This document shows, one piece after another, positions 11,553-13,187 of a stretch of 64,000 nucleotides of DNA. Below the pieces are notes generated by a model, which saw only the letters and a list, made by a program, of their open reading frames with translations, had not been told where the DNA came from and did no database searches. The stretch spans positions 1 through 64,000 of the forward strand of contig DF237247.1 in NCBI GenBank assembly GCA_000708835.1, in the 5' to 3' direction. Made by a program: the position numbers and the translations under genes. The DNA comes from Klebsormidium nitens. Its lineage: Eukaryota > Plantae > Klebsormidiophyceae. The number at the start of each line of letters is the position of its first letter. The first letter of the stretch is position 1.

Positions 11553-12911
11553 ATGGCCCTCTCATCCTGCAAGGGTTCTCTATCTCCTGGTCTCTCTGTC
11601 AAGCGGTGCTCCAATGGCAGTCCTAGCATGTTCCAGGGTTCATCCTTCCGTGACCTGGGAAGCAACAGCATTGGGCTCCAAAAGACGGCCTTTCTGGCGC
11701 TTACTGGCAGCGCATGGACCCATGCTCCCACCAAATCAGGTCAGTGGTACTTCTTATCAGCATTTGTAGTCACTTTAAGTTCTTCTCTTGGCCTCATGTC
11801 ACCTTGATGCAGCAACCAGAAAAATACAACACTGTGGAGAATGGTGATTAGGTAGCAGGACCATATTTATGCAGAAACATGACGGAGGATTTTTAGGTTC
11901 TAGGGTCCTAATGAACTCTTCCTCTTGTCTGCAGCAAAGGTGCATCTCGAAAGGCGAACTGTAATTGTCAGAGCCATCAGTCTCTCCGAGGAAGGGGAGG
12001 AGCTCCTGAGGAGAGTGGGAGAGCTTATTGCTCCCTTGGCCGACAACCAGAAGCAGCAGCAGCGCACACTCGAGGAGCAACAGCGCACACTCGGGGGCCA
12101 GCAGCGTCTTCTCGGTGGTCTTGTGGAAGATGGGGCGCGCCAGCAGATTACCAAGATGCTGGGAGAAGACTATCAAAGGCCGCTTCTGGCCAGGTCCCTA
12201 CAGGATCTGGCTCTGCTGCTGCCCGAAGAAGCTGTGCACAAGAGCAGTCAATCCAAGCAAGTGCTGCTTGGGCCACTGGAGAAGGCAACCCTTGCCAGCA
12301 CATCTTTGGTTGAGGCAGGTGTACCGGCAAGATTATTGGGTAGTCTACAGGATGGAGCCGGTCAAGTTGGATGGTTCCGAGACGATGGCACCGTCAATGA
12401 TTCCATGCTAGGAAGGTTTATTGGCACCTGCCCTGACGCTGCGCTGAAACAAACGCTAGGGCGCCTGCGACGGGTTTTGAAGCTAGACAAGAAGGACGAT
12501 CGCATCCAGGAGCTACTCCAATGCGAGAGCGCTGGCATTCTGTGCCTGGTGGCTGCGGCGTTCCCAGAGGCATACTTGACAGGACGGCCTGGAGTAATGC
12601 CCAGCGATGAACTAGAAATAGACTGTCGGGGGCGGATCGACATTGCGCAGAACGGTGACTTTGCTTACATTGATGTTGGAGAAGTCAAGACGATGCTGGA
12701 CTATGCCACCTCGGTCCCGCAGTTAGGACTGCGTCTCGGGGCACTGAAGTGGTTCGTCTGCAACGCATGTGGTGCAAAAGTAGAGGGAGTCCGGTTAGTG
12801 GGACGGTTGTTTGTGTCTAAACATGGGACCAAGGAGGAATTTGCTGACGCCTCTCAGAGAGACAGAGCATCAGTGGAGTGGGGTTTCAGCTTATACTTGC
12901 ATAGAGTGTAA
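11553..12911 (+). CDS. Putative plastid-targeted coiled-coil + PD-(D/E)XK nuclease-like protein; exons 11553-11739 and 11935-12911
   Basis: Phase-1 GT-AG intron restores the frame. Ser/Gly/Lys-rich N-terminus almost free of acidic residues, ending VIVRA. QQRTLEE/QQRTLGG/QQRLLGG heptads. ELEIDCRG...GEVKT...PQL motif set. Confidence 0.75.
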
Positions 12912-13187
12912 TGCACCGGGTGCCACAAGACAGCGAGAGCCATGATGCAGTGGAGACACGGGACTTTCAAGCTCCTGGAACGAGCTCCCAGTCGCGGCGT
13001 GCGGGTGATGATTGTGCCGGAGGCGTACACGAGCAAGACCTGCGGAGCCTGCGGGTGGCTGCACCACAGTTTGGGAGGCGCGAAGGAGTTCAAGTGCAGA
13101 AGTTGTGGTGTAGATATAGACAGGGACCATAATGGTGCCCGCAACATATTCCTGAGAGCGATACGATCAGGAATAATCCCCGTATGA
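12912..13187 (+). pseudogene. Fanzor2/TnpB (IS607-like) C-terminal remnant: zinc finger and RuvC-III only
   Basis: KTARAMMQWRHGTFK...VPEAYTSKTCGACG...FKCRSCGVDIDRDHNGARNIFLR; the N-terminal part of the protein, including RuvC-I, is absent. Confidence 0.9.

Follow-up and report, generated by a model that had tools for sequence, protein, structure and literature searches.

A 64-kb stretch of Klebsormidium nitens DNA, referred to here as the window, carries a conserved two-exon gene whose stop codon is followed, after only a few bases, by the 3' part of a Fanzor element. Very probably, this locus consists of a conserved gene ending at its normal stop and, behind it, the recent and dead relic of a 5'-truncated Fanzor element. 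The element is of a short non-autonomous Fanzor (TnpB-family) type with a full length of ~2.2 kb, comprising a Fanzor open reading frame (ORF), a 3' guide-RNA region and two ends. Of this, the window keeps 401 nucleotides (nt), or ~18% of the element: the right end, preceded by the last 87 codons and 136 nt of 3' noncoding DNA. The features of the locus are as follows:

11553-11739, forward strand: first exon of the upstream gene, a member of the KFL_002980060 family; it opens with the ATG at 11553 and encodes, in 62 codons and one further base, a presequence rich in Ser and Thr
11740-11934, forward strand: intron of the upstream gene (GT...AG), with its borders GTCAGT...TGCAG read from the sequence
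11935-12911, forward strand: exon 2 of the upstream gene, encoding coiled-coil repeats, a helical region and, at the C-terminus, a conserved alpha/beta domain that bears a motif of the D...ExK type
12912-12922, forward strand: 11 filler bases, TGCACCGGGTG, between the stop and the first Fanzor base, matching neither side
12923-13187, forward strand: remnant of a Fanzor/TnpB-family ORF, i.e. the last 87 codons plus the TGA stop at 13185-13187
13188-13323, forward strand: 3' noncoding region of the element (predicted Fanzor RNA (fRNA)/omegaRNA scaffold) up to the right end, which reads ...CAACTATCGG
13324-13345, forward strand: flank directly 3' of the right end, given by position only; putative guide portion if the scaffold is transcribed and processed

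The junction between gene and element had been noticed in an earlier reading of this DNA (the original prediction), and the bases quoted there (...CAT AGA GTG TAA TGC ACC GGG TGC CAC AAG...) were found together with their translation at 12900-12947, including the single TAA and the shared frame. The downstream ORF (12942-13187) lies in the frame of the upstream ORF, and 12912-13184 is open over 91 codons without a stop. The original prediction was also right in that a different gene stands, anatomically, in place of the N-terminal four-fifths of the Fanzor, and in that the omega-RNA region occupies the place where a 3' untranslated region (UTR) would be; both this region and the right end of the element are intact there. 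It was mistaken, however, in letting the Fanzor half start at the stop itself: homology to Fanzor DNA begins at 12923, after 11 unrelated bases, and full-length relatives match by tblastn only from 12924. The borders of this filler were taken from alignments with the closest homologous gene locus (L005, an environmental contig) on the gene side and with three loci of the element (L011, L009 and L010) on the Fanzor side.

This arrangement was not encountered a second time. TnpB-like sequence follows the stop in none of ten homologous gene loci (L001-L008, L012 and L013, including three other K. nitens paralogues), and the DNA similarity of these loci to the window ends at 12910-12916. The junction is also absent from the three Fanzor loci L009-L011, in which Fanzor sequence, and not this gene, lies upstream of the breakpoint. 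A 26-nt string spanning the stop, the filler and the Fanzor start has no exact match in the metagenome contigs of the Joint Genome Institute (JGI). Further copies of the element, from which breakpoints should be mapped according to the original prediction, do exist, and three of them were compared and the breakpoints placed, but neither these three loci nor the ten gene loci contain the junction. The prediction would fall with a unique random junction, and what was found comes close to one: 0 of the 13 fetched loci share it.

The TAA at 12909-12911 is best read as the natural end of a conserved and selected gene, and not as a nonsense mutation within a Fanzor, because homologues end at the same alignment column and because the substitution pattern speaks for selection. 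The upstream ORF (11925-12911) is 100% identical to K. nitens KFL_002980060, and the deposited model likewise ends at this stop, with ...LHRV as the end of the protein. The ~13 close members of the gene family come from K. nitens paralogues, from contigs of JGI and Logan and from a single Trinity transcript, and a profile search extended the family to ~25 members, out to the chlorophyte Monoraphidium (35% identity over full length). Nearly all homologues end in ...SLY(L/V)H(R/K/T)(V/F) at one alignment column, irrespective of whether TGA, TAG or TAA serves as stop. The ratio of nonsynonymous to synonymous substitutions (dN/dS) of 0.28 versus L005 and 0.15 versus L002 points to purifying selection on the upstream gene. 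On this reading, the gene product ends in ...LHRV as in its relatives.

The two-exon structure of the gene was shown by comparison with L005; the exons were searched separately and not as a joined, spliced protein. The ATG and coding sequence of exon 1 are kept in L005, apart from one in-frame 15-nt gap, and the exon 1/exon 2 junction, ...TKS|AKVHL, is that of the deposited protein model (P0001). In the intron, identity to L005 is lower and indels occur, while both flanking exons are conserved; loci L006 and L008 align across the intron too. No Pfam match was obtained for exon 1, and the presequence might be an organelle transit peptide. Ser/Thr/Arg-rich, transit-peptide-like extensions are present at the N-termini of family members P0005, P0012, P0013 and P0023 as well as at 11553-11739 of the window, and variable heptad or short-unit coiled-coil repeats (DUF7310-like) follow behind these extensions.

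Judged from this alignment, the upstream gene sits in its ancestral setting with only its 3' flank replaced, because exon 1, the intron and the DNA further upstream (~0.6 kb) are collinear with L005, similarity ending at 12910. In L005, just 75 nt follow the stop; they are unrelated to the window sequence at that place and were found nowhere else in the window, where only chance 8-12-mers matched. Further upstream, the window holds an extra ~0.99 kb at 10533-11520, opposite ~50 nt in the collinear L005, which is likely an insertion in the window or a deletion in L005. This stretch contains four direct repeats of ~37 nt, 54-79 nt apart (10857-11080).

On the other side of the junction, the Fanzor assignment of the remnant, including the EAYTSKTC glutamate, zinc finger and RuvC-III aspartate named in the original prediction, proved correct. 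The 91 codons match the Cas12f1-like TNB domain PF07282 (E 1.2e-18; 67.5 bits versus a cut-off of 26.3), and TnpB profiles are matched over their last ~80 positions (NF040570, 308-386 of 389; phrog_506, 283-364 of 403). Additionally, Cas12f/TnpB models in NCBIfam and PADLOC are matched. The remnant holds a CxxC...CxxC zinc ribbon, and in alignments with Cas12f, TnpB and L79 chains their RuvC-III motif is matched by DRDHNGARNI. The closest solved structure is L79 (ApmFNuc, PDB 9b0l), a Fanzor2; the Fanzor2 label given in the original prediction is putative. In Fanzors, an alternative RuvC-II glutamate is located ~45 residues downstream of the canonical site. Alignment through the full-length relative P0031 places the PEAYTSKTC glutamate of the remnant at E467 of mimivirus L79/ApmFNuc (PDB 9b0l), which is such an alternative RuvC-II glutamate and, according to mutation, is needed for cleavage (PMC10530073). 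The first residue of the remnant is a His matching H359 of the 449-amino-acid relative P0029. The N-terminal ~80% of a Fanzor, with the RuvC-I Asp and the WED and REC domains, is absent, relatives matching only from their residue ~359 of 449. Since RuvC-I, WED and REC are missing, the remnant is a fragment that can neither act as a nuclease nor hold RNA as a Fanzor does.

The family to which this fragment belongs was traced with protein searches. While scans of metagenome and viral contigs with the single fragment protein gave no matches, an exhaustive HMMER search returned two close relatives at 87% amino acid identity, P0029 (449 amino acids) and P0030 (81 amino acids); residues 5-86 of the fragment align with residues 359-442 of P0029. 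The loci of P0029, P0030 and P0179 (the latter from a word search with P0029) are the three element copies L009, L010 and L011. These have ~2.2 kb in common (in L011, the full element is 3874-6087), consisting of the Fanzor ORF only, short flanks and the 3' noncoding region, with no second ORF. In the Fanzor2 clade, association with an IS607 TnpA is frequent. Window positions 12923-13323 are 97% identical to L011 5680-6086 over 407 nt, and 76-80% identical to L009 and L010. Relative to L011, the remnant has a single in-frame deletion of 6 nt and a few substitutions, a difference of ~1.5%.

Nothing else of the element was found in the 64-kb window, neither with six full-length relatives in tblastn nor with the three element loci in blastn and tblastx. 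Upstream of 12923, similarity to L009, L010 and L011 is zero within the window, i.e. no left end is present, and a repeat search revealed no relevant terminal repeats or target-site duplications around the locus. Sister copies are damaged as well. The ORF of L010 is broken into pieces of 371 and 81 amino acids (L010 7852-8003), and that of L011 has a premature TGA at 5819-5821 within the zinc ribbon, where the window has TGG (Trp). L011 moreover contains, at 1730-1882, a stretch of ~153 nt in which the 3' RNA region and the right end stand alone; it is 95% identical to window 13175-13327 and is a second, independent 5'-truncated copy that retained the right end. Hence, broken and truncated copies are common in this Fanzor element family. 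The L011 element (JGI 3300060284, contig Ga0590114_0006640) lies between two ORFs for DNA methylases, at 2688-3683 and 6314-7450, and an HNH_3 ORF is located upstream (region 441-7450). This context looks virus-like or restriction-modification-like, and the element may have split a methylase gene. For K. nitens itself, Fanzor elements have been described, and the K. nitens Fanzor tested in that work was classed as Fanzor1 (PMC10530073).

Besides the 87 codons, the remnant retains the part of the element from which its guide RNA would be made. The region 13188-13323 is kept in four other copies (L009, L010, L011 and the solo copy at L011 1730-1882), and all copies diverge at 13323-13327. Consensus folding of the five sequences with RNAalifold gave 50 pairs, four of them with compensatory changes, and the single-sequence fold has a z score of -2.5; no Rfam family matches this 3' RNA region. 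The fRNAs of Fanzors derive from the stretch between the ORF end and the right end, and a guide role of the flank at the right end would follow from TnpB/Fanzor biology (PMC10530073).

The most likely course of events, inferred from this anatomy, starts from a copy of the element that once lay just downstream of the gene and pointed the same way. The 3' flank of the gene and the initial ~1.8 kb of the element would then have been lost, either in a deletion or in a repair or transposition event that was aborted, and end-joining with the 11 filler bases would have sealed the break. Deletions entering the gene would have been selected against, leaving a breakpoint outside the coding sequence; the position of the breakpoint at the stop is less odd because selection on the gene removes deletions that reach the coding sequence. 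The shared frame of remnant and gene is chance, as the original prediction had itself allowed with its one-in-three estimate, and nothing found here adds weight to it. With ~1.5% difference from L011, compared with a silent-site distance of 0.18 between the upstream gene and L005, the simplest account is that the relic is recent. In this arrangement, the gene has no 3' UTR of its own, and its mRNA probably runs into the remnant. Ordinary decay of DNA transposons and the exonisation of transposon fragments as 3' UTRs are both known phenomena.

Several points weigh against a truncated relic as the explanation of the locus. That the breakpoint falls exactly at the stop codon is a coincidence, and selection has to be invoked to account for it. 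L005, the one close locus available to represent the empty site, continues for just 75 nt beyond the stop, and with these an insertion plus deletion looks the same as a larger rearrangement. The DNA comparison covered the window and the fetched loci, and other copies of the junction or intact elements may exist elsewhere in the K. nitens genome. Finally, neither the ORF nor the RNA region of the remnant is damaged, and both hardly differ from the full element, which fits recency but by itself would also be compatible with use.

Such use would amount to an exaptation, with the remnant serving as an orphan guide-RNA locus, whose scaffold is loaded by a Fanzor encoded elsewhere, or as the 3' UTR or polyadenylation site of the gene. 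This is unlikely, although the anatomy is favourable in several respects: the 3' noncoding region and right end are complete and 97-100% identical to the full element, the predicted fold is conserved with compensatory pairs, no space is left between the stop and the remnant for another 3' UTR, a solo right-end piece is also present at L011 1730-1882, and the fRNAs of Fanzors come from this very region (PMC10530073). A partner protein is harder to find, however, as no intact Fanzor of this family carrying the name of K. nitens was among the closest proteins in the word search with P0029, and the nearest full copies are themselves broken. The high identity is to be expected of a recent relic anyway. 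In a more specific version, the mRNA of the upstream gene ends in a complete orphan guide scaffold equipped with a new, flank-derived guide (13324-13345), and a Fanzor acting in trans is programmed by a host transcript. This version is considered distinctly improbable. If true, it would mark the beginning of the capture of an RNA-guided system by its host, or else provide a decoy that titrates the nuclease.

That the draft scaffold mis-joins the gene to repeated Fanzor sequence is very unlikely. Multi-copy and young families such as this one can indeed confuse short-read assemblies, but a mis-join would normally sit inside the repeat and not at the boundary between repeat and unique sequence with 11 private filler bases. 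In addition, the remnant has its private 6-nt deletion and substitutions, and unique sequence runs on at both sides.

Among the interpretations offered by the original prediction, a cargo-carrying non-autonomous element fails because the left end is missing and upstream synteny is conserved: neither a left end nor any other Fanzor part exists in the window, and the gene stands in its ancestral setting. A nascent fusion or RNA-guided module fares no better, since the stop is natural and conserved and the junction is unique among the fetched loci, and since the fragment is without RuvC-I, WED and REC. In molecular terms, a fusion would require read-through of the stop or its removal by splicing, yielding the upstream protein with a zinc-ribbon/RuvC-III tail, which is scarcely credible. 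The same frame, the single stop and the 91 open codons beyond it are what such a protein would need; the frame match, however, has a prior of one in three, and the openness is inherited from the 97%-identical element. The stop coincides with the conserved terminus of the family, where the deposited model also ends, no homologue has the tail, and no RuvC site could form from a tail devoid of RuvC-I, WED and REC.

A few further candidates were rejected. The idea that the upstream ORF is the N-terminus of the Fanzor itself, interrupted by a nonsense mutation, had some apparent support in the combined length of 328 + 91 amino acids, which is about TnpB size, and in an 'IDVG' resembling RuvC-I; relatives end at this stop, however, and Fanzor N-termini are unrelated. 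A tiny intron containing the TAA is without support, the deposited model and the homologues stopping there. An endogenous giant-virus insert, an idea that arose from a T5orf172 ORF in the window and from primase, Erv1 and dNK genes near homologues, is unsupported for the window, given the conserved intron in the gene and a CFAP65-like host gene nearby.

The original prediction had called the upstream gene nuclease-like. This was not established here: what speaks for it is a sequence motif, the topology of a predicted structure and fold matches below significance. Searches of Pfam, NCBIfam, PHROGs, PADLOC and PDB profiles gave no match to the upstream protein beyond coiled-coil noise. An AlphaFold2 model of the entire ORF was too poor for use (predicted local distance difference test (pLDDT) score of 57), and its Foldseek comparison was uninformative. 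For residues 66-328 (the last 263 residues, with a 26-sequence alignment), a model with pLDDT 80 and a predicted template-modelling (pTM) score of 0.80 was obtained. Its topology is a helical part followed by a helix-strand-strand-helix-strand unit (H139-152, E172-175, E182-190, H195-217 and E224-232). According to the alignment, this alpha/beta unit bears an acidic residue in a GR-x-D motif and a GE-x-K motif, both mostly conserved, with exceptions; the closest homologue, L005, has Gly at one of the candidate acidic positions. Foldseek returned no hit at E <= 0.001 with the upstream-protein model (best E 0.12 in PDB and 0.017 in BFVD), and weak local matches include EcoO109I, SgrAI, EcoT38I, Hef/Mus81 and viral entries named 'endonuclease-like' and 'PD-(D/E)XK'. 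To call the protein nuclease-like is thus a sensible guess.

In K. nitens, the upstream gene has three other paralogues, and each of them has a D5-like primase gene (Prim-Pol, D5_N and DUF5906) on its 3' side and on the same strand (L001 10124-10787, L012 7950-10558 and L013 4001-8535, on scaffolds DF237285, DF237851 and DF238179), and one deposited model joins the paralogue and the D5-like primase into one protein. The window copy has no primase nearby. The three cases suggest that paralogue and primase form a repeated gene pair, which may belong to a mobile or virus-like unit that has integrated.

As to the rest of the window, CFAP65/HYDIN-type Ig-like domains, which are typical of cilia and flagella proteins, occur in a single ORF of 1261 amino acids on the reverse strand (21773-25555), an ordinary host gene. 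Because of this CFAP65-like gene and the 100% identity of the upstream ORF to KFL_002980060, the window is assigned to nuclear DNA of a charophyte alga. On the forward strand, an ORF of 136 amino acids (8875-9282) has a weak match to T5orf172 (GIY-YIG-related; E 2.7e-4), a domain common in large DNA viruses and mobile elements. Another forward-strand ORF of 346 amino acids (14092-15132) is built of ~249-nt tandem units that are 88-91% identical (14503-14879 and 14752-15128); it encodes Ser/Gly/Ala/Thr/Leu-rich repeats (…SGASVLGGL…) without a Pfam match and overlaps an ORF on the reverse strand (14043-14918).

By itself, a truncated relic behind a gene is of little weight, as it adds just another decayed copy to a family of mobile elements that is already known. 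The locus does teach caution: where a gene is followed by a TnpB/Fanzor tail that is open and in frame, a fusion should not be concluded from this as long as the junction does not recur. Three by-products of the analysis may be of wider use: a young, ~2.2-kb Fanzor-only family, whose copies in K. nitens and in environmental contigs with HNH and DNA-methylase genes are 97% identical; solo fragments retaining the right end, which could be orphan guide-RNA genes; and an uncharacterised green-algal protein family with a presequence, a coiled coil and a possible PD-(D/E)xK-like domain.

Compared with known systems, the upstream protein may have, in its C-terminal domain, the fold of the PD-(D/E)xK (restriction-endonuclease-like) nucleases: its predicted core topology, the acidic residue of GR-x-D and the GE-x-K motif are compatible with their alpha-beta-beta-beta-alpha-beta core and conserved D...(D/E)xK residues, but neither its sequence nor its model matches a known member significantly. 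The downstream part shares with the Fanzor/TnpB (OMEGA) elements of eukaryotes and giant viruses the TNB ribbon, DRDxNGARNI and the alternative Glu aligned to ApmFNuc E467, as well as a structured 3' noncoding region that ends at the right end and membership in a multi-copy family. In contrast to those elements, only the last ~18% is present here, without RuvC-I, WED, REC and left end, which makes it a relic and no working member. Truncated solo-end transposon relics next to genes are a further point of comparison. The locus departs from them in that the breakpoint is the stop codon of a host gene, the remnant is in frame, and the retained part is the guide-RNA-encoding end; with them it shares one intact and one deleted end, filler at the junction, lesions in sister copies and the occurrence of another solo right end.

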